From: Paragordius varius
Taxonomy: Eukaryota > Animalia > Nematomorpha
Assembly (NCBI GenBank): GCA_964247055.1
Contig: OZ176056.1
Span: 4,557,001 to 4,590,000 of the forward strand
Direction of reading: 5' to 3'
Length of the DNA: 33,000 nt
In this document: positions 11,775-32,168 of the stretch, piece after piece
Layout: each line of letters starts with the position of its first letter
How positions within the stretch are numbered: the stretch's first letter is position 1
Program-made: the position numbers and the translations under genes
Notes under the pieces: model-generated
Told to the model about the DNA's origin: nothing
Database searches by the model: none
Seen by the model: the letters and a program-made list of their open reading frames with translations, nothing else

Positions 11775-12139
11775 AATTTGCAGGAAATTGCGATGCATTC
11801 ATACACCCTTAATATCCTACATATTTATATACAAATAAATAGTTTACCATATTTCGTCATAGATTTTATATTTTTTATAAAATACCAGCGTAAATCTCGA
11901 GTCCGAAAGCCTTTATACGAGATGATCTCATAATATTGGCGAAAAATAGCCTCAAAAACATATTGTTGAGCGGGTTTAAGGGTTCAAAATCCCCAAGCAC
12001 ACTAAATTTTAACAATGTTAACAAAAAATATTTATTCAGCAATGATATTAATATAAATAAAAATAAGCAGTTATTGTGTGAAATGTGCAATTTGACATCG
12101 TATATATAAATAATAAAAAGGACTTTAATTTTGTCCTTC

Positions 12140-13385
12140 GAAAAAGTTTGGTACTCAGTTTTATTTATTGATATTGCGAAGGCAAGTTGAACAGGAAATT
12201 GCGATCTTTTAAATTCAAAGAGTATATTTGGAATCAGAGGAATAAAAACATTCTCACCTTTAAAAGGTTCCGTTAATATAGTCGCTTCTATTATATGATA
12301 ATAAAATTTTTCACAATAAGTCGTGTGCCATTGCAAAGTCTTGGCTGATTAATATTGCCTATCAATATTATTGGAACTCCTACCTTTAGGCGCAATAAAT
12401 GGGGTGGTTTTCCTGGTGTATCATAGGAATTTAGGAATTCGGTTGCATAATTAACTGCATCACCTAATTCAACTACCATATTTATGGATGTATAGATTAA
12501 TGCATTTTGATTGATTTTAGATAAAATATAATTGTTTATTTCAAATACATTTTGGTTTTTTGGAGTCAAAATTGCACGAGCATACAATAGTTGCTTTGAA
12601 TATTAGAAAGCAGATTGTTTATTAACTCCGCTCTTGATGTCATAATTCTGCAAATGTTAATGACAACGTTATACCTCTAATATCCATGTTAATTGGTAGA
12701 GTCCCATTTCCGATTGCTAATAAGTGTTGTGAAAAAATCTGCTGAGGTATTATTTTAAAAATGTACACGCATTTTTAATTGTTAACGTTCTAACAAAATA
12801 GATTTTTTAAGGCACGAATTTATTTGGTTAGTGGGGTAGAGCGAGGAATGACAGGGAATCTTTCTAAAATCTCCGGAGAGTATACCGAAACATTCCCAGA
12901 AATTTTCCCCCCTGTCGCTTAAATCTTGTAATTATTGATCAAGGTCCTTGGGTGATATTATATGCACCATTGTACATTCCTCATATAATGATTTTACATT
13001 TTTGCATAACCTTCTCCATGCCAAATGATTTCGACACATAATATTTTCATGTATTTAGTTCCTCTGGGTAATAAGGTAGCATATCCCAGAAGAACCTATA
13101 GCCAAAGCTATATTTTTTACTTCTGAGCCAATATTAGCTTTAAAAGAAATGTTTTACTGGTCTCCCCTGGTGCATCCAAAAAATGTATCCCACGAACATC
13201 ATTTGAAATATCTCGCATTATTTTATCGTATATTATCTTTTCTTCCTGTGTTAGTTTGGATAAATAGCAATTTAGATAGGATGTTTACTCAAATTCATTA
13301 TAACTTTGTTCAAGACGAAGTTCTATGATGGAAACGACAGCATTCGATTTGGAGATGGCATTTCCAATAGCTTAAGAGGCCTGTT
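12140..13385 (-). pseudogene. Helitron PIF1-like helicase relic with frameshifts and stops
   Basis: Minus-strand motifs in correct order: GMPSPNR / SKLTQEEKIIYDKIM / FLDAPGETSKTFLL (eroded Walker A) / IALAIGSSGI, TLLPRG / QKCKIII*EECTM (Walker B WDE) / LSGDFRK, NQINSCLKKSI / RAILTPKNQNVFEIN...EFLNSYDTPGKPPHLLRLKVGVPIILIGNINQPRLCNGTRLIVK (ORF 12291-12587) / IIEATILTEPFKGENVFIP..FEFKRSQFPVQLAFAISINK (ORF 11875-12336). No Rep domain seen. Confidence 0.92.
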
Positions 13386-19866: not shown

Positions 19867-20776
19867 AACCCTTATGTATATTAACCAACATTAATATCCT
19901 CCAAATTTAATAATTTGGCACGCTTTGCTTATTATAATGTTATAGATTATGGTTGTTGAAAGAAAAAATAGAGGCTAATGAAATATGCGACAGTTTGACG
20001 GACGGCATTTTCATTCTACTTTTTTACATCATTATTACATGAAATATATATTACTTCCGATTTCTGTGTAAATCATATCATATAAATAAATTATCAAAAA
20101 ACCAAAGTTCATTATTTTAGGGTTAAATTTTATTGATAATTACTAATAATAAATAGATTAGCAAGATATACAAGCTACTTGTTAGATTGTCGGCACCATA
20201 TTCATTCTCCATACAATTAACTTACCTTATTGTAATAATTGTCTAATTAAACAATTATTCTTTGATCTATTTAAACAGTGAGTGGTGTACTATATATTTT
20301 AAAAAAGCTTGAATTATCCAATAGATATATATATGGATTATGCAATGAAAAGATATTTATTTAATACCCCACACTCTTTTTTAATAAATGCAAAAGGTAT
20401 ATATATTAGATAAATATCGGGGAATTCTTTTGTACGCAGGAAATAAGGTGACATATGGTTGAAATGACAAAAATTTATAGATTTGATATCAAAAATAACA
20501 TTTTCAACCTTATTGATGTATAATAATATTAAAATGTTAAGAAAATAATAATATTAAACAATAATTTTATATAACTTTATTTTTTAGGCAAGAATTTGAA
20601 ACATTTATACATAATATTATTTATTGATAAACATGGAGATACAACATAACGTATTATAAAATATTAAATTTCACAAAATAATATATATAATTAAATAAAT
20701 TATTAATTGCAGGTTTTTGATAAGAAAATATTTTAGATTGCAATCCAGGAATGTATGTGTAATATATTCAATTATT

Positions 20777-21349
20777 CTAAAAATTATATATAAAGAAACA
20801 ATAGTTGATAATATAAAGACATAAAAATACATCTAGAAAATTATGATGAGTAATTTGAAAAATAATATTAAGAAAAAATATTAGTATATCAATAAAAATA
20901 TATATTTGGCCCAAAATATATCGTTTAAAATTTGTGAAATATTGCATTTTTGTAAGTTGATTTTTAGATAATTTTTGCATTGCTTTTTGCCGTTGATGCA
21001 TTTCAAAATCATCTCCCAACATTCTGAAAGTTATTGCACATTTTCGAATAATTTTTTCATTTTTTAAATTTTTGGTAATATTATAATTCTTGATTTTATT
21101 AATGGTAGTTTTTTGACTTTTTGGTGAATATGGATCTATGTTCTCAAAATGTTTTTTGAATTTTGTTTCAAAAGCTTTTTTTGTATCTTGTCGCATAATA
21201 TTTCCCTTTTCACTATAAGTTTGAATATATTTCATTGGTGGGTTTCTCCTAACCTGTTCCAAGTCACCACCATTGCGATTTCCTTGAATACTGAAGTGAG
21301 AAACGTTTCTAAGCTTTATTAATTGATTTAGATCTAGTTGAGCTACCAT
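20777..21349 (-). CDS. 190-aa protein with BH3-like motif and C-terminal hydrophobic anchor (candidate BH3-only Bcl-2 family protein)
   Basis: Longest uninterrupted ORF in the window. Residues 104-116 are CAITFRMLGDDFE (nt 21040-21002), followed by a hydrophobic stretch at ~144-164. A plausible 5'-UTR intron lies at 21477-21353 (CAG|GTAAAT donor; pyrimidine tract and TAG acceptor 3 nt before the ATG). The gene is well supported; the product is an inference. Confidence 0.65.
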   Translation of the reverse strand: MVAQLDLNQLIKLRNVSHFSIQGNRNGGDLEQVRRNPPMKYIQTYSEKGNIMRQDTKKAFETKFKKHFENIDPYSPKSQKTTINKIKNYNITKNLKNEKIIRKCAITFRMLGDDFEMHQRQKAMQKLSKNQLTKMQYFTNFKRYILGQIYIFIDILIFFLNIIFQITHHNFLDVFLCLYIINYCFFIYNF

Positions 21350-22119
21350 ATTCTAATATTTTGTAGAAAAAAAATAAATTTTATTGTTTTTGGAAAGTTA
21401 AAAAAAGCAAATAATTTGAATAAATATTTGCAATATTTTGAATAAAAAACTGAATAAAAAAATATTTATAGATTTACCTGAAACAGTCAAATTTATCTTT
21501 GAACAGTATAGCAAATTGATATTAAAGTAATTATGGAAAAAAAATTTTTAAACAATTTTTATAAAATAAAAAAATAATTTGAAATTTAAATAATTAAAAA
21601 ATTTGGTAAAATCAATAGTAATAGTATAAATATACATAATTTAAAAGATAACATAACATAATTTTAATTTTTTAAATTCCTAATTTTCCAATAAATAATC
21701 CCTTTCAATTTTATTTTTACTTTAACATTAAAAATTAATCATATATAAATAATGACATAAGATGACATAAGCCACACACAATATATTCCTAAAATATTAA
21801 TCTACTGGTATACTTAACTAATTTTATTGAAAATTATAATTGTTTTGAGGATAAAAATTTATTTGTTTTAAGTGTAATAACCATTAATTTATGGTTGATT
21901 GGATGAGAATTATTTTCTATTCCTAATTTTAGAATTTACACTTGATTACAGTTTTTTACCCTAAGCCATTTTTATATATTTTACATGAAAAGTATTTAAC
22001 ATCGGTGCTAATTTACAGAAAAAAGAAATTTATGAGGATAAGACTAAAAACTTAAGGACAAATATGATTTTTTCTAAAGATAACCCATTCTAATTTAAAC
22101 CATGAATTTTTACCTATTA

Positions 22120-22390
22120 AATTATGCAGTAAAAATTAAATTTATACGGACAAAACGTAAAAATATGAAGACAAATATTTCTAAAAAACAACCATACTTT
22201 TTGCATCTTGATTTTAAAATTTAAATAATGGTTTAAATTTGAAAAGTATGGAATATGATGTATATTGGTAACACAATCAATTAAATATTATGGAAAAAAA
22301 ATAGATTTAAAAAAGTATGGTTGTCTTCTCAAAATACTTGTCTTAGTATTTTTCGTTTTGTCCGTATAGTTTTAGTTTTTACTGTATAAC
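22120..22390. mobile_element. Family E palindromic MITE (copy 1)
   Basis: TATACGGACAAAACG (~22143) / CGTTTTGTCCGTATA (~22355) and ACAACCATACTTT / AAAGTATGGTTGT. Homologues at ~24790-25030 and ~31410-31870. Outer limits are uncertain. Confidence 0.75.
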
Positions 22391-23253
22391 TTAGTGTATG
22401 AACAATTGTGTCTAAATTCCTTATTTTGCTCTTAACCCAAAAACAAGAATTAGAAAATATGGTTGTCTTTTTTAATTTTTTTAATCATTTTACATAATTT
22501 TAATTTTCACAATAAAAATTTCTATTTTATCTCGTATAAAACAAAACGTTGTATTGTAATACCATTATCACAAAAATTATGGCCAAACTTTATTTTTTGT
22601 TTTTGCTAAACCTTTAAAAATACTAGAAAATAAATATTATAGTCAATAATAAATTGCTATTTAAATTAGATGGGTGTTATCTATATTAATTAAAAATTTA
22701 ACAATAACAACTACTAAAATTGTACTTTTATATTATAGTATAAGCTCTGAATGAATCGTCAAGGAATAATGCGTTTAGGAAATATGTGTTCACACTCTAG
22801 TTATATCTATAACTAAATCTATTAACTAATCATAAACATAATTTTATACTCATCCTACCGCTTTCACCATTATTAAATCATTTTTTCTTTTAAGCGATAT
22901 GGTTTAAAAAATAATTTTCCATATTGGTTCTCAGGATAGGAAATTTAATTTAAATAAAATTATTAATATAGAAATAACAAAGGTATTTATCCGTATATCA
23001 GAATGTTATATTGTGGGACATAAGAGCTACAAAAATGATTCGAAATTAGCGGTTCAGACTAAAATTAAAGCCTAATATAAATATAAAATATACAGGAAAA
23101 ACGAAAAAATTTATTTGATCCAAATTGATAGGATTTTTTTTCTTTTTTCAACGATTCATTTAACTTATTAAAGAAATTAACCACACAAGCATATTTAAGG
23201 ACAGAACTGACAACTAATTTGTCAGTTTGAAAAAATGAAGTATTATATTGCAG

Positions 23254-25530: not shown

Positions 25531-28500
25531 CTAATAAATCATTCTAGAATTTAAATTTTTGTTATTGGTTGTTGTATTGTTGAAATTGACATTTGTCATC
25601 CAATCTTGATTGGAATAATCTTTGCTAGAATTTTCAGAGGCATTTAATGCGCCACCACCACCACCACCCAAGAAATAAGAGGTGGGAAATGGGATAGCTT
25701 CAGAAACATTATCAGCATAATTATAATTATTATTATCGTTATGATAATTAGTATTAAAGTTTGTATCGGCAGATTTGGGGGGTTTATTCATCGTCAAATT
25801 ATTCATAGAGGTTTGATTGGGCGCTACAGGCATCTCCTTGTAATGTTCCTTGAAATAACTAATGAGTGCCGTTACTGAGCCAAAGATTTGTCCTCTATAC
25901 CTTAGCCCATTAATGATAACACTAATGTATTCATAATGGGTTCGGGTTCGGGGCATAAAAGCCAAAATGAATTTACCTAACATATATAAGCAAATAAAAT
26001 TACATTACACACCAAAGATTATGGTAACTTATCAGTGAGATAAAATTTAATATATGAAAAACACATATAAAATTAATCAATCTGTTATTAAACTAACATT
26101 CAATAATTATTGACCAAAAAGAAAGTATATTGAAAATTTTACAGTCAATTTAGGTTTTTATATCTTCCTATTCATAATTGATAAAAATTTACAGTTAAAA
26201 AAAATAACCGGTGAGACATTATAAAATAAAAAGTAAAGTAAGGTATGTTGTTAGTACCAGGATATTCTTTGGATGGGCCAAATGCATAAGGGATTCGAGA
26301 CGGCGTAGCTTTTTTATTTTCCCGTAATACATAATCAAGCAATCTAGAATTGATAAAATTAGAATATATATATATATATAATGTTAATACAATAGAACCC
26401 TGACCACATAAAAATTATATGTTTTTGGGTAGTTTTTAAAATAATTCAAAAAAAGGATATTATATATATTCCATTATTATTGGTTTATAATAATATACAA
26501 ATATCTTAAACAAATTAATTCGTACAAAAGCGGACTCAGTATTTTGTACTTACTGGGAAACCTTATATTCAAAAAACCTAACAGTGTAGAATGATAGCAG
26601 GATAATTATTAGAAAAGCGCTGTATATACCTAATTATTCCCAAATTGGAATTATTTAATTCATTTTTCACATTTCAAAAATTAATGAATGGAGAAAAAAG
26701 TGTGCAATGATTTAGCTAATTAATTTAACTACTCATCTATATGTAAAAACTTATTATAAAAATTTAAAAAAAATATAGAAGCCAAATAAATTACAGTGTA
26801 CATTTTGATGGTTGCTTATTTCACATAATAGGGCAATTCGCAACACAGTAAAGTAGGGAAAAACAACAAAATGTTGAATAAACAATTATTCCTTTTCTTT
26901 TTTCCATACATTCCTGTGTTACAAATTGCCCTACTATAAAGTGAAATAAGCAACTATTAAAATAAATTCTATATATGCGTCGTTGACCTACCTACATATT
27001 AATCCAAAACACTCCCTATAAACATCAAAAATAGCACAATAATATTTAGTATAAATAAGCGCCATTTACCAACCTATATATTGGCAAAAATTTTAAATAT
27101 AGAATAAAATAATTTAACATAAACAACCTTTTAAATTCCTCGTCACTGGTTGAATCTTTTGCCGTAAGAGTTTCATCATCGTTAATGGCATTGAGTATTT
27201 CCTGATCAGCGGTGAGCAATGTTGGATTTTCATAGAAATATTTGTGATTTGCCAGCTCTCTAACGTACCCAGCCAGGGGTGTTATATAACGCGCCAATAT
27301 TTCATCTAAATCTTCAAATTCTTCCGTGTCAATCCACAAACTTTTACCAAGCATGTAGGGTTTATCTTTACCCTCCTCTTTAATATCTATTGTGATATAT
27401 ATATATATATATATAAACGATAAATATATTAGTAAACACTGGATTCTCGGGCCAATTGGCAGTACAACAGCATATATGGCAAAAACAACAAATGATTGAA
27501 ATTAAACAAAAATCATCTTAACTTTAATCAAATTAATTTATTTGAATAAACTTTGTTTTGTATTCATACGTTCCAGTATAAAAATTTAATCAAATATCGC
27601 TTTGTACATCGTTTGAATACAGATGATAAAAATATAATGAAAACGGCAAAATAGGTTAAAAAAAGTTTTTTATTATAACTTATATTTCATGACTTGCATG
27701 TATATAATATCGGATGCTATAAAACCAACAAAAACAAAATAAAATGCAAATTATGTACAAATTTCTTTTCGCCTTTATATATTTCCTATCAAATCATAAT
27801 TAAAAGTAATATATATATACATATCTTAAAAAAGAAATCAATCAAAAATTACCAATGTGTTGAACAACACCATGCCAAACCTTCCACCCCAAACTCAAGT
27901 GATTAGGACCCTTACTAAAGCTCGGTCTGATAAGGACTTCCCCGGGGCTTAAACCAGCCAGGTGGCGTCGTACTTGAGCATATGTCGTAATATTTCGAAA
28001 GCTCGGATGCGATATAAGCCGTTTACATCCATATATTTTATTATTATTATTGATAGTACTGTTCGACTGCTTATGAAGGTTTTGTTTGTATGCTGATATG
28101 AATAAAAAAAGATGAAAAAATTGACCATGGTGAAACCATTAATTGTATTAGTATAAATACCAGCAATACCATCTAATATATTCTGAAAGAGCACAACAGC
28201 ATAATTATGTTTAAGTTAGTTCTTTAGTAAAAATGTTAATATGATAAAAAACTTACATATTCCAAACTCGGAATCTTCCCGTTTAATTTTGTTATTACCC
28301 AAATTGGGTAGAGCAGAGGTTTGATTAAGGGATGCTTGTAGAGATTTTTTCTTTAAAAATGTCGTCCGCAAAGCTTGGTATTGTGTTTCCTCGTCATAAT
28401 CATAGTATATGTCACGCGGGGGTTTAAATTCATTGTTAGAATCGGCCAAGTCTGAGCTTTTGCTAGTTAATTCCACCGAAAATTTTTCCACATCGATACG

Positions 28501-30236
28501 TAAGACACGGGCAAATATAGTCATACCCATTTTGACTCGATCTTCAGGGTTACGTACCATACTATCCGATAAATTTTTCACGTGAATAAATCCCATCAGC
28601 CCATTTTCTAATCTCACCCTTTGAGAATTAAATAGTGTAAATTTAGTAAATTTTTGTTTATGATTATAAAATACAAAATATATTGCTGCTGAATTTACAA
28701 TGTTTCCAATTAAACACACTTAAAATTGATGTCTCTCAGAGTGTAGCTAGCAAATTAACAACAGATACCAGTTTTATATGTGTTAAAAAACATAGATCTG
28801 TTAAGACAGGACTTTTTTCATGTTAATTTGTCTCCATTTTACAAGATATTCAAAAGATAATGATAAATTTGAAGTTTAAATAGTGCAAAAAGTTATGCTA
28901 TACTAAAAAAGCTTTTTGTTTAGTATACTTTATGCCAATAGGTTGACCGGGACACATTTCAGAATCATAATGTTGCCACACTTCGGAAAGTTCCATAAAA
29001 TCTGATTTAAAACACACGGGACAACTCCAAAGCCCAGTTTCTTCGATTCGAATAGGATTGTAACCACCTGGGAGCATTAAATTTATAGTAAAAAGGACTG
29101 GTAGTAAAATCAACTCAAAAAATAAAATGTAAAAGAAAATTTATATTTTTATATTGGAAACACCATTTTTGATTCTTGTTTTTTTAATTTAACGTATATG
29201 ATTATTACATTTTCTGTTCGCTACTTCGACAAGAAATATATTAAATGTATCAATGTCCTAAAAATACGGCCTTTTATCACTAAATGTCAATTCACTTTTA
29301 TATTTAATTAAATCTTTAAAATTTTTATTATGTTATAAAACACCCTAAAATCTGTATCGAAAAAAAACCAATTAACCAACCTACCTCCATTGTTAAGTCT
29401 TTCTACAGCCTTTCGGGCAGGGGTATAGGCCAATCCAATGACACGAACTGCAACAAGTTTTCCAATGTAAAAAGTTTGGGGTGTTTCTTTCGTCACCATG
29501 TTAAAACGTTCTTCAAGCGTTGGTTCCATAGGTGGGATACGGGTATCTTTATACCTTAAAACACAAAATTTATATTAGTAAATATAGAAACAAAAGTTTA
29601 AAAGACAGACTTTGAATTTCTAAATAATTCATATAACATCGTATTTTTAAAATAAATAATTGAAAGTGTAGCATTTTAGATTTCGACCAGATTTAATTTA
29701 TGATGTATATCACATTATTAATTTGAAAAATATAATTATTATTAAAATTTGAACATTATACAATAATAATTAAACATTGTTCCACCAAATAATTCACAAA
29801 TACCGTTTATTGTATTTTTTTATATACATGTATTATTATACCAATGTAAGATCATATCGAAAAAATAAAATATAAAATGGTAATAAAAGTTAAATTTTTT
29901 CAACTTTTTATTACTAAGATACACGCATAAATTTCAACATAAATACATGTAAAACTACTCACCTATGAGTCAATTCGGAGCGAATATCATACAGCGTAGC
30001 AGTTTTATTGCCGAAACCTTGACGGGCCAATTCCTCAGCAAAAGCATCCAAGTCCAAATCTTTAAGCTTATCAGGGCATTCAAATATCTCTTCTATGGCA
30101 GACGCAGGGTCTGTCGTCCCTGTACCCTTTCCCCCGTGCTTATCTTTATTTCGTTTTTTGGGTACTTTTTTCCCCTTCTTACTACTTTTACTTTTCTATG
30201 ATATGAGCAAAATAATATTTACTGTCATGATAATTA

Positions 30237-30284
<48 letters not shown>

Positions 30285-32168
30285 TCTTTGAGGTATTTAA
30301 TAAACATGACTCCTTTCGTTAATTTTTTGTTTCAACAATGATATTTATAATATTAAATAATTCGTTGAACACATTATAAAAAGTACAATATATACAAAAA
30401 TTGTACCATGAAATCAAGAAACTCTCAAATTTCTTTTACAAACCATCATCGACGCATTTGCCAACGTATTTTAAGCGACTTGCCAGTCTCACAAATTATT
30501 TATTAAAAGATTCAAAAAAAATGATAAACTAATTCACACACACTCACCAACCTTTTTATTTTTTTGTTTGGGCATAAGGGATTGTAGGACGCCACATTCT
30601 TGTTCTTCGCTATTGTAGTCATCAGAATTTTGGGCAGAATCGTTTTGTTCGCTTTCTTCATCATCAGAAGCGCTTGCATTATTTTCATTCTCATCCTCGT
30701 CATCGTATTCTAAGGCATCGATAGCCATTTTGCGGGCCCATTCATACGTTTCAGGGTGTATACGCGTGCTATCAAGCACTTCAATGTAATACTCATCACT
30801 GGTAACTATTGAATAATATAGATACATTTTATTTACAACAAAAAAATGATCTTTTACTGTTTGTGTTGTGTAGTTGAATGAATTTTATTTTATATATACC
30901 ATTTACAATTCCCCCTCAAATAATTATATGTTTTTTATAATTAAAAATTACGTATATTTTTAAAAAATATAATTTTTTTCAAATTTAAATAATACGGAAA
31001 AAATCATAAACTATGCCATAAAAATATATATCATATTAGTAATGAGTTATATTAGTTCGAAAATACATATTTTATTTTTAGGGTGAATTTGAATTGTTCG
31101 AGGGTGACTTTGAATTGTTCAGGGGTGAATTTGAACTGTAAATGGTATATTAAAACAATCTATTTTTCTCCGTTATTTTTGTACAGAACATGGATTTAAT
31201 TTATAGGATTAAAAAACTCAATAATTAGCTTTAATTTTATCATAATCTTCCTAATTAACTATTAAATGTTATTGGCATATGTTGAATTGGAATTCATCCT
31301 TCGATTATTTTATCGCATAGCATATTATTTTTATCAAGAATTTATATATGGAAAAACTCTAAATCTTAAACCTTTGTAATTAACAATTCTAATATTATAC
31401 ATTTTTATAAACCATAAAAAGTTGAAATTATACGGACAAAACGTGAAAATATAAATGAATATATTTTTCTACCGATACCATACTTTTTAAATCTTGATTT
31501 TTTTTTAATTATAACCCATTGTTAGCAAAGTATTATATAGAGATGTAAATTGGTACCGCAATCAATTACAGTCATGTATGAGAATTGTCAAACATACATT
31601 TTTAATTGATTTTACTTTGTTTTTAATTGTTATAATGTTTGATATGTCAACTTTAAACATGCGCATTTTTAAGCCTTAAAATAATGATAGCCATATATTG
31701 TAAACAATTAAATTCAATTAAAAACGTTTATTTGACAATTCTAAACACACATGACTGTATGTTTTTTACGATTATGATTAAATGTTTTTAGAAAATAAAT
31801 TAAGGTTTAAAAAAGTATGGTGGTTGTCTTTTAAAAAAAATTGTTTCCTTTATATTTTTTGTCCATATATAAAAAAATTTAAATCTGTCTTATTTATAAG
31901 GAAATGTAAAATCAAAATTTTTTAAAGGTAAAAAAAACCTAAGCGTCCTTCCTCTTCCGCTAAGCTCTGGGCCCGAGTATCGATGCGAATAAAACCGGCC
32001 AGGTTAACAAATACTCTCGGTCCAAGACCGGCTTGAGTAACGAGTTGTGTTCTATTTTGCAATCCAACAATCAATCCACCCGATAAATGGATACCTAATG
32101 TGGAAAAAAATATTTTTTTAAGCTAAGCCTATTTTTTAAACGGTTAAATTTTTTGTTTCAGTTAAATT

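Follow-up and report, generated by a model that had tools for sequence, protein, structure and literature searches.

The window, a 33,000-nucleotide stretch of the Paragordius varius genome (contig OZ176056.1, positions 4,557,001 to 4,590,000), carries a 190-aa open reading frame (ORF) on its minus strand, 4 kb downstream of SPT6. An earlier note on this DNA had proposed the ORF as a candidate BH3-only apoptosis initiator. The frame is present where the note placed it and occurs as one copy in the genome. Listed in the 5′ to 3′ direction of the minus strand, with positions of the window, the locus contains the following features:

21478..21530, minus strand: putative 5′ non-coding exon, its 3′ end set by the donor
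21353..21477, minus strand: candidate GT-AG intron of 125 nt within the 5′ UTR, from sequence signals, ending 3 nt before the ATG
20777..21349, minus strand: ORF of 190 codons, with an ATG start and a TAG stop at 20777-20779
21218..21232, minus strand: LC8/DYNLL-type core K-x-[TVI]-Q-[TV] (KYIQT), aa 40-44, from a regular-expression match
21002..21040, minus strand: BH3-like 13-mer CAITFRMLGDDFE, aa 104-116, read in the sequence and matched to a signature
20921..21001, minus strand: basic linker, aa 117-143, with a net charge of +7 and no acidic residues
20849..20920, minus strand: hydrophobic, membrane-span-like segment, aa 144-167, from hydropathy and an AF2 helix
20783..20839, minus strand: second hydrophobic stretch, aa 171-189, an AF2 helix
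20620..20625, minus strand: first AATAAA after the stop, ~150 nt into the putative 3′ UTR

The ATG lies one codon past an upstream stop and has an A at -3 and a G at +4. Upstream of it, the 125-nt candidate intron begins with the donor TTTCAG/GTAAAT (exon end at 21478, with a TGA in frame 9 nt upstream of the donor) and ends with the acceptor TATTAG/AATATG, whose AG is at 21354-21353 and is accompanied by a T-rich tract. The signals of the 5′-UTR intron proposed earlier can thus be read directly in the sequence, and a real intron is plausible. The same AG could equally be a trans-splice acceptor. For the putative exon, the 5′ end was guessed at ~30 nt downstream of TATAAAA at 21557-21563. Within the ORF, a good donor, CAG/GTTAGG, is found at aa 33. 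After the BH3-like motif, no GT occurs before aa 174 (window 20830), so that the first one falls C-terminal to the hydrophobic segment at aa 144-167, as had been stated; the sole possible in-frame GT donor after the motif, GAT/GTATTT at 20830, falls in the aa 171-189 stretch. The AATAAA at 20620..20625 is weak evidence, as the hexamer is common in such AT-rich DNA. Genome size is 110.6 Mb, compared with 200-300 Mb for published nematomorph genomes, and the GC content of Gordionus (26.93%) is similar to that of the window. The spliced leader of the ctenophore Hormiphora californensis gave no match here when up to 2 mismatches were allowed, and ctenophores are reported in the literature to lack Bcl-2 genes, which, unlike ctenophores, the present genome encodes.

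To analyze whether the ORF is a gene, we compared it with chance expectation and with known exons. It is unlikely, in our judgement, that the ORF is no gene but an intergenic frame left open by chance, with splice- and poly(A)-like signals that arose accidentally from a composition of 79% A+T. The 191-codon open frame exceeded the longest frame in all 300 Markov-1 simulated 33-kb windows, in which the longest frame averaged 105-111 codons and never surpassed 163, and none of the 300 windows reached 190 codons. However, extrapolation of the same simulations to 110 Mb gives ~2 frames of at least 190 codons expected by chance. The codon score of the whole ORF also sits at the 76th percentile among non-coding ORFs, local GC is 21% compared with 33-40% in known exons, and no gene with an identical product is on record. 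Against a chance frame stand the start context described above and a GC1 > GC2 > GC3 periodicity along the frame, with both off-frames scoring far lower. Additionally, all other window ORFs of at least 97 aa have their own Pfam match, with the exception of one adjoining a Pif1 fragment (SPT6 exons were scanned singly against Pfam). The motifs considered below would, moreover, have to fall in one of a handful of chance frames.

Coding signal is unevenly distributed along the ORF. The per-codon coding score, which is 0.14-0.40 in known exons, was +0.21 over aa 1-60, fell to -0.11 over aa 61-103, rose to +0.12 over aa 104-146 and dropped to -0.20 over aa 147-190, while GC content falls from 33% in aa 1-60 to 15% in aa 147-190. 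Codon usage looks coding for aa 1-60 only, and aa 61-103 and aa 147-190 look non-coding. The fall in coding score and GC, the good donor at aa 33 and the complete orphan status of the ORF among 1.84 billion representative proteins all agree with a young or de novo ORF, in which the first 30-60 codons would derive from an older exon or expressed region and the AT-rich remainder would have opened recently, giving a product that may be transcribed and has no settled function. We regard such an origin as quite improbable, since ~130-157 extra stop-free codons at a stop frequency of ~8% amount to an estimated 1e-5 to 1e-6 event per exon and the motif coincidences would still have to be explained.

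The BH3-like motif places Cys104 at h1, Phe108 at h2, Leu111 at h3, Gly112-Asp113 at the small residue-aspartate pair and Phe115 at h4. The general 13-residue signature, Phi1-Sigma-x-x-Phi2-x-x-Phi3-Sigma'-D-Z-Phi4-Gamma, is matched once in the ORF, at aa 104, with Cys taken as Phi1 (residue classes for the signature count were from Biopython's Kyte-Doolittle table). When the hydrophobic positions were limited to L/I/V/M/F and Cys was excluded, the ORF did not match. The minimal BH3 core is L-x(3)-[GAS]-D, with a near-invariant Leu at h2 (PMC10107002). The motif does not fit this core, because the Leu at h2 is replaced by Phe108, and the core is matched nowhere else in the ORF. Thus aa 104-116 fit the general signature and not the minimal core; the F in place of the conserved L had been pointed out in the earlier note.

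How often does such a motif occur by chance? The match in the ORF was the only one to the general signature among 29,186 residues of open frame, and shuffling of aa 1-146 produced the signature at a frequency of 2.25e-5; however, 1-9 chance matches are expected in a proteome of 4.1 million residues. The hydrophobic moment, calculated over the whole protein in 18-residue windows, peaks at aa 98-116, with the BH3-like motif inside the peak. A Pfam search of the ORF returned no Bcl-2 domain, in agreement with the earlier reading that no BH1 or BH2 is visible: neither PF00452 nor PF02180 matched at E ≤ 10, so that no BH1, BH2, BH4 or Bcl-2 fold was detected, and no PDB sequence matched.

N-terminal to the BH3-like motif, the KYIQT core lies at a distance of 65 residues (Q to h2). 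LC8 binds the motif [D/S]-K-x-[T/V/I]-Q-[T/V]-[D/E], which BMF carries as EDKATQTL, and both BMF and BIM are LC8 clients (PMC3078936). LC8 genes are encoded in the genome. The flanks of KYIQT are Met at -4 and Tyr at +2, neither of them a preferred residue. The core was noticed post hoc, and when aa 1-103 are shuffled an LC8 core turns up in 1.6% of cases.

C-terminal to the motif, the basic linker described earlier is confirmed; it bears a net charge of +7 and lacks acidic residues. The hydrophobic segment reported next to it is also present at aa 144-167, with a 19-residue Kyte-Doolittle mean of up to 2.29. Tail-anchored membrane proteins carry one transmembrane segment no more than ~30 residues from the C terminus and no N-terminal signal sequence; in the ORF, whose tail was scored by hydropathy, the aa 144-167 segment is followed by 23 residues that include the second hydrophobic stretch. 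The coding strand of aa 144-167 is 15% GC and 55% T, so its hydrophobicity could be an accident of composition. Indeed, hydrophobic 19-mers this strong occur in 3-5% of open segments translated from local non-coding DNA; therefore the caveat attached to the original proposal, that AT-rich tails are easily hydrophobic by chance, is correct. A single-sequence AF2 model had a mean pLDDT of 55. In it, aa 1-98 are below 50, and this N-terminal region is probably disordered, judging from the low model confidence. A helix is predicted for aa 97-168, with the BH3-like motif near its start at a pLDDT of ~45-60 and values of 74-89 over aa 144-167, and a further helix is predicted for aa 171-189.

The ORF has no relatives in Pfam, in PDB sequences or by word search with the whole ORF or aa 92-146, and phmmer against 1.84 billion representative proteins yielded no accepted relative. 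This protein set should include the Gordionus proteome because its parent collection holds Gordionus proteins. The single phmmer match, P0001, is a 1073-aa tandem-repeat protein of which 9 stretches aligned to aa 61-85, and we rejected it as a repeat artefact. No orthologue was found by word search or phmmer. A full-length match to an unrelated family, named in the earlier note as a result that would count against its proposal, was likewise sought in Pfam, the PDB, word search and phmmer, and none was found. We also rejected two other identities for the ORF. For a SNARE or coiled-coil tail-anchored protein, the heptad register before the anchor, judged by eye, would put Leu in the central layer in place of Gln or Arg, and Pfam gave no SNARE match; for a transposon or repeat origin, the ORF is single copy and flanking terminal repeats are absent.

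In the HMM scan suggested as a check, no Pfam BH3-only model reached its cut-off on the ORF or its fragments. NOXA (PF15150) was the sole Pfam family touched by a 36-aa motif fragment, at profile positions 24-46, i.e. the BH3; the fragment scored 15.5 bits and another fragment 14.5 bits, relative to a cut-off of 27 bits, and the whole ORF gave no score. As a control, we scanned the genome with the same model and found three unrelated places scoring 14-16 bits, one of them inside an unrelated 236-aa ORF. An N-terminal control fragment matched the irrelevant family RGI1 at the same E-value as the NOXA match. The NOXA match is ruled out as independent evidence by this chance level and by the RGI1 control. 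The BMF and BIM models (PF15185, PF06773 and PF08945) gave no match at E ≤ 10 in the ORF or fragments and none genome-wide, and the EGL-1 model (PF11430) matched neither the ORF nor the genome.

Among the top 30 ESM Atlas neighbours shown, every family-bearing set was BH3-only or Bcl-2-family. The best was BMF (0.87, with 192 of 256 shared features), BIM clusters were also present, and a BIK cluster scored 0.80. All scores were below 0.9 and recognition was low (1649), a value typical of shuffled sequences that favors a chance frame. Additionally, the N-terminal 100 residues, which lack the motif, also draw BMF clusters, with a score (0.79) that is at chance level; the Atlas BMF clusters may thus simply attract disordered sequences.

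Taken on these results, the ORF may also be a real, established orphan gene encoding a small membrane-anchored protein unrelated to Bcl-2, its BH3- and LC8-like motifs having arisen by chance in K/N/I/F-rich low-complexity sequence. We consider this possible, if somewhat doubtful. The length of the open frame, the context of its ATG and the candidate intron favor a gene, and Pfam and the Atlas provide no more than leads. The general BH3 signature is expected 1-9 times per proteome by chance, the motif lacks the invariant Leu, and the LC8 core, noticed after the fact, occurs in shuffled sequence at the rate given above. However, we estimate that well below one small protein per proteome would combine the 13-mer BH3 signature with an LC8 core upstream of it and a hydrophobic anchor downstream. 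In addition, Pfam, the PDB and phmmer offered no alternative family or fold for such a protein, and the SNARE-like alternative fails by eye.

A BH3-only protein would act on Bcl-2-family partners, which had been proposed as a genome-wide check. The search gave a mixed outcome, with one Bcl-xL-like gene and two caspase loci present and no Bax/Bak type or NB-ARC detected. A genome without any Bcl-2-family partner, named in the earlier note as a refuting outcome, is thereby not what was observed. The Bcl-xL-like gene is the single PF00452 locus (G000:C6:6424730-6425179; 110 bits), matching Bcl-xL chains at E 2.5e-30, and the genome yielded no additional Bcl-2-family locus of Bax/Bak type. Relative to human Bcl-xL, its BH3 'DEFE.RY', BH1 'ELF.DG..WGR' and BH2 'ENGGW' are conserved, and this Bcl-2 ORF shares 66% identity with a protein of Gordionus (Nematomorpha) encoded on a pseudochromosome of 31.75 Mb. 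One caspase locus is a 412-aa ORF with a Peptidase_C14 match (1.3e-48) and a sub-threshold CARD (E 0.012), and the second is a multi-exon caspase on C5. A search for NB-ARC (Apaf-1/CED-4) found no match in the genome. Because no BMF, BIM-BH3 or EGL-1 profile match exists genome-wide, no other candidate ligand is known for the conserved groove.

That the ORF encodes a functional BH3-only protein is, to our reading, a tentative possibility, though narrowly the favored one. The proposal of an unannotated BH3-only protein gains from the Bcl-xL-like partner, the LC8 core and the Atlas neighbours and loses from the Phe at h2, the sub-cut-off Pfam scores and the unclear coding past aa 60; as read from the sequence, the positive case is made up entirely of short motifs. 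The fuller version, a BIM/BMF-type BH3-only protein in Nematomorpha with Phe at h2 and a single Bcl-xL-like target, in a genome where no Bax/Bak-type gene or NB-ARC was detected, we hold to be possible but slightly more doubtful.

If the BH3-only reading is correct, the gene would be lineage-restricted and have its coding sequence in one exon. Its product would be disordered in the N-terminal half, continue as one long helix, end in a hydrophobic anchor and act as a BIM/BMF-style death initiator. The helix at ~aa 98-116 would insert Cys104, Phe108, Leu111 and Phe115 into the groove of the Bcl-xL-like protein, and Asp113 would pair with the conserved Arg in its BH1 'WGR'. The hydrophobic tail would put the product on the membrane of its partner, while KYIQT could tether it to LC8-containing motor complexes until a stress signal frees it. 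Neutralization of the Bcl-xL-like protein would then free caspase activation through the CARD-like caspase and the second caspase.

In Bcl-2-regulated cell death, BH3-only proteins serve as the stress sensors. To our knowledge, their evolution is so rapid that none has been recorded for entire phyla. They are reported not to have been identified in sponges and placozoans, to have been found only recently in Drosophila and not to be transferable by sequence search between protostome branches (PMC8998228, PMC10107002). Among the full-text literature matches listed, no paper pairs Nematomorpha with BH3-only, egl-1 or ced-9. The genome studied here has an intact-looking Bcl-xL-like groove, yet no recognisable ligand, Bax/Bak-type gene or NB-ARC protein. 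Nematomorpha are known for heavy gene loss, and a validated ligand would reveal how the pathway is wired in such a lineage. We know of no BIM/BMF-type architecture in Ecdysozoa so far. If the reading is true, the LC8-BH3-anchor architecture would occur in Ecdysozoa and would either predate the protostome/deuterostome split or have arisen again convergently. If the motif is a chance occurrence, the locus would hold an ordinary orphan ORF and serve as a warning on motif-only calls in DNA of 75-80% A+T.

Sayonara (Drosophila CG14044; PMC10107002) sets a precedent, in that its BH3 motif arose within a lineage-restricted protein of otherwise unrelated sequence and escaped homology searches. Sayonara differs in belonging to a conserved coiled-coil family (PTHR21974), in keeping the Leu and in having experimental support, whereas the Paragordius ORF has no family and is known from sequence alone. 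HRK and BIK share with the ORF the order of BH3 helix, short basic linker and C-terminal hydrophobic anchor, the helix and anchor of the ORF being predicted ones. There is no sequence relationship to either protein, and in the ORF a further 23 residues, including a second hydrophobic stretch, extend past the anchor and do not end in basic residues. Like the motif of the ORF, NOXA carries Cys-Ala starting at h1 and contains R-x-[FL]-G-D. In contrast, NOXA (PMAIP1) is ~54 aa, the ORF is 190 aa, and the profile match falls well short of the family cut-off (15.5 vs 27 bits).

Nematoda are generally regarded as the sister phylum of Nematomorpha, and EGL-1 of Caenorhabditis (PF11430) is a BH3-only ligand of a single Bcl-2 protein, CED-9, comparable to the one Bcl-xL-like gene here. 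Its BH3 core reads small residue-D-D-F-acidic, as does that of the ORF. Unlike the ORF, EGL-1 retains Leu at h2, and it is not known to have a membrane anchor; additionally, PF11430 matches neither ORF nor genome, and NB-ARC (CED-4) was not detected here.

The differences from BMF and BIM are the Ile rather than Thr at -1 of the LC8 core with its non-preferred flanks, the Phe rather than Leu at h2, and the lack of an HMM match to PF15185, PF06773 or PF08945. BMF and BIM nevertheless resemble the putative product of the ORF in being small, with an LC8/DYNLL K-x-T-Q-T-type motif N-terminal to the BH3 helix, and largely disordered, as its N-terminal half probably is, and they are its nearest ESM Atlas clusters. 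Convergence or chance could account for this likeness equally as well as homology. BIM has a hydrophobic C-terminal anchor like the candidate one of the ORF, and the Q-to-h2 spacing of BMF is close to the 65 residues seen here.

The 190-codon frame on the minus strand at window 20777-21349 (hereafter the ORF) is the longest ORF of the window. An earlier note, made from the sequence alone, had proposed that it encodes a BH3-only protein, and the frame, motif, basic linker and hydrophobic segment that it described are all present:

aa 104-116, window 21002-21040, minus strand: BH3-like 13-mer, CAITFRMLGDDFE, read from the sequence
aa 117-143, minus strand: linker, net charge +7, zero acidic residues
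aa 144-167, minus strand: hydrophobic segment 1, 19-residue Kyte-Doolittle means ≤2.29
aa 171-189, minus strand: hydrophobic stretch 2, downstream of segment 1
exon end 21478 (donor TTTCAG/GTAAAT) to AG 21354-21353 (acceptor TATTAG/AATATG), minus strand: putative 5'-UTR intron, 125 nt, with a T-rich tract

After the motif, the first GT on the reading strand falls at aa 174, beyond segment 1 as the note had stated. Therefore, under GT-AG splicing, motif, linker and hydrophobic segment 1 would lie in one exon. An in-frame TGA precedes the putative donor by 9 nt, the start ATG has A at -3 and G at +4, and AATAAA occurs ~150 nt past the stop. The intron that the note called credible thus has its donor, T-rich tract and acceptor, but splice, start and poly(A)-like signals are cheap in 79% A+T DNA and all of these are putative.

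Several observations were counted for a gene. Among 300 Markov-1 simulated 33-kb windows, the longest open frame had a mean of 105-111 codons and a maximum of 163, and none (0/300) reached 190. The window has six other ORFs of ≥97 aa: four are SPT6 pieces and one is a Pif1 fragment, each with a Pfam match of its own, and the last is next to the Pif1 fragment. Additionally, GC1 > GC2 > GC3 holds in the ORF frame, both off-frames have a far lower coding score, and the ORF is single copy in the assembly. No transposon-like repeats were found flanking it. Counted against a gene, the extrapolated Markov-1 model allows about 2 frames this long per 110 Mb, the whole-ORF codon score reaches only the 76th percentile of non-coding ORFs, and GC along the ORF drops from 33% to 15%. 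A codon model that had eight known coding pieces as its training set gave aa 1-60 +0.21 bits/codon, like known exons (0.14-0.40); the scores that follow, -0.11 (aa 61-103), +0.12 (aa 104-146) and -0.20 (aa 147-190), were likewise counted against. On balance, the ORF is probably either a genuine gene or, at the least, expressed. That it is not a gene is unlikely, and that it is a young or de novo ORF is quite improbable.

Other features share the window. A gene for an SPT6-type transcription elongation factor has its exons, scanned one by one, at 25531-30827 (-), with HHH_9, S1/Spt6_S1 and tandem SH2_2 pieces and introns of ~0.2-1 kb; its last coding piece, co-directional with the ORF, ends ~4.2 kb upstream of it. 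Two overlapping ORFs of 98 and 153 aa at 11875-12587 (-) belong to a Pif1-type helicase (Pif1_2B E 1.1e-16) and probably represent the decayed remains of a Helitron-like element, its frame broken near 12291-12336. At 22118-22393, 0.8 kb upstream of the putative promoter of the ORF, a compact ~276-bp element with long inverted arms (22118-22202 and 22310-22393) that are 84-87% complementary resembles a MITE or hairpin.

The motif claim stood in part. CAITFRMLGDDFE conforms to the general 13-residue BH3 signature if Cys104 is taken as hydrophobic at the first hydrophobic position (h1), but departs from the minimal core L-x3-[GAS]-D, with Phe108 at the second (h2). A non-Leu h2 is rare among known BH3 motifs. 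The signature matched once, at the ORF motif, in 29,186 open-frame residues (window plus fetched loci) and arose in 2.25e-5 of shuffles of aa 1-146; for a 4.1-million-residue proteome, composition predicts 1-9 chance matches, or 6-44 for the looser pattern of the earlier note. Within the protein, amphipathicity peaks in an 18-residue span that contains the motif. The motif lies near the N-terminal end of a predicted helix (aa 97-168), which follows 98 low-confidence N-terminal residues in a model with a mean pLDDT of only 55.

An HMM scan, proposed as a check in the note, gave no Pfam match for the whole ORF at E ≤ 10. A 36-aa motif-centred fragment had a sole Pfam match, PF15150 (NOXA; E 0.016, 15.5 bits), over the profile's BH3 region and within chance level genome-wide. 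Because three unrelated places in the genome score alike on this profile (14-16 bits), one inside an unrelated 236-aa ORF, and a motif-free N-terminal control fragment matches an irrelevant Pfam family at E 0.019, we gave the NOXA match no independent weight. The 236-aa ORF (L006:980-1690 (+), contig C1:2360979-2361689) has an N-terminal membrane span and, by eye, candidate glycosidase-like motifs of an amino-acid-transporter heavy chain; its 14.9 bits show the ease of chance matches to NOXA.

The ORF had no match among PDB sequences, nor did the whole ORF or aa 92-146 in a word-based search of 5.8 billion clusters. The sole phmmer match among 1.84 billion representatives was rejected as a tandem-repeat artefact. 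These blank searches carry limited weight because the assembly's own proteins are evidently absent from the libraries (no self-match) and because even Bcl-2 shares no more than 66% identity with its counterpart in the closest proteome available. In the ESM Atlas, the top 30 neighbours of the whole ORF came down to sets for BMF, PXT1, BIM, BIK, a Bcl-x isoform and an unnamed arthropod cluster, with no unrelated named family. The BMF set scored 0.87 (192/256 features); scores fell short of the 0.9 line of the tool, with low recognition (1649). Residues 1-100 alone returned BMF clusters again at a chance-level 0.79, so there is either a BMF-like feature within the N-terminal half itself or a tendency of these clusters to attract disordered sequences.

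BIM and BMF are LC8 clients, and the LC8/DYNLL motif is [D/S]-K-x-[T/V/I]-Q-[T/V]-[D/E], with EDKATQTL as the BMF ligand (PMC3078936). KYIQT, at aa 40-44 of the ORF, fits the core of this motif, with 65 residues from Q43 to h2, and LC8 genes are present in the assembly. The core occurs in 1.6% of shuffles, and we discounted it, as a post hoc observation with less than ideal flanks. At the other end, 3-5% of the open segments (≥40 aa) translated from the window's non-coding DNA contain a stretch as hydrophobic as the ORF tail (55% T, 15% GC in its DNA), bearing out the note's caveat that AT-rich codons yield such tails by chance. The tail could serve as a membrane anchor but is weak evidence for one.

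The assembly (110,561,105 bases, 44 contigs) was searched in six frames exon by exon, an approach that split or divergent genes can escape. The multi-domain Bcl-2 partner that the note said to look for was found: profile and protein searches detected a sole Bcl-2-family locus, L002:1366-1818 (+) (contig C6:6424730-6425179). Its ORF is strongly Bcl-xL-like, matching PDB chains at E 2.5e-30, and BH3 'DEFE.RY', BH1 'WGR' and BH2 'ENGGW' align. The best match of this ORF, at 66% identity across 97% of its length, is a protein of the nematomorph Gordionus sp. m RMFG-2023 encoded on a pseudochromosome-sized contig. The Gordionus genome has 26.93% GC, similar to the window. The source is thus probably a nematomorph, although published nematomorph genomes measure 200-300 Mb; an identification as the ctenophore Hormiphora californensis was rejected, as the spliced leader of that species is absent from the assembly and ctenophores are reported to lack Bcl-2 genes. 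Past the BH2 'GGW', the Bcl-2 ORF reads V-N-V-F-stop, the Val codon giving a GT directly after the Trp codon; Bcl-2 genes have a known intron position splitting BH2, which this GT fits. The Gordionus Bcl-2-type protein P0002 runs on from GGW into a C-terminal anchor. As annotated (175 aa), it is without the BH3 stretch ('...LTHLSDEFEARYQ') of the Bcl-2 ORF here, which may be either a mis-called intron or a real difference.

Caspases were also found, at two loci. One is an apparently intronless 412-aa ORF (L004:1148-2386 (+), contig C6:5262647-5263885; Peptidase_C14 1.3e-48) whose N-terminus is CARD-like below threshold (E 0.012), a candidate initiator caspase. For Apaf-1, NB-ARC and CARD profiles gave no exon-level match in the assembly, where exon-wise searches may miss split genes. 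EGL-1, BMF and BIM-BH3 profiles had no match there either. The groove of the Bcl-xL-like partner looks maintained, no recognised ligand was detected by these exon-wise searches, and a maintained groove makes the existence of a BH3-only gene likely.

For the combination of the signature with an LC8 core upstream and a hydrophobic segment downstream, and with a post hoc penalty, we estimate roughly 0.004-0.03 chance look-alikes per proteome. For a genuine BH3-only gene of precisely this appearance the expectation is of similar order, about 0.006, assuming that the gene exists, is anchored, and has an LC8-type or similar regulatory motif and a non-Leu h2. Between the two it is close to a toss-up. 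The BH3-only proposal keeps its partner and general signature, but the Leu core and a family match fell away; a functional BH3-only protein is possible, though short of probable, and an orphan gene with its motifs by chance is almost as likely.

A linear motif defines the functional class of BH3-only proteins, and judged by its residues the ORF has the general signature without the Leu core. It does not belong to any of the sequence families tested (BMF, BIM, NOXA and EGL-1). A full-text literature search gave no BH3-only report for Nematomorpha among the matches listed; if real, the ORF would be such a protein in a phylum without one among them. Its putative architecture is most like that of BIM and BMF (LC8 motif, BH3, anchor), with HRK and BIK (BH3, basic linker, anchor) as the alternative closest arrangement.
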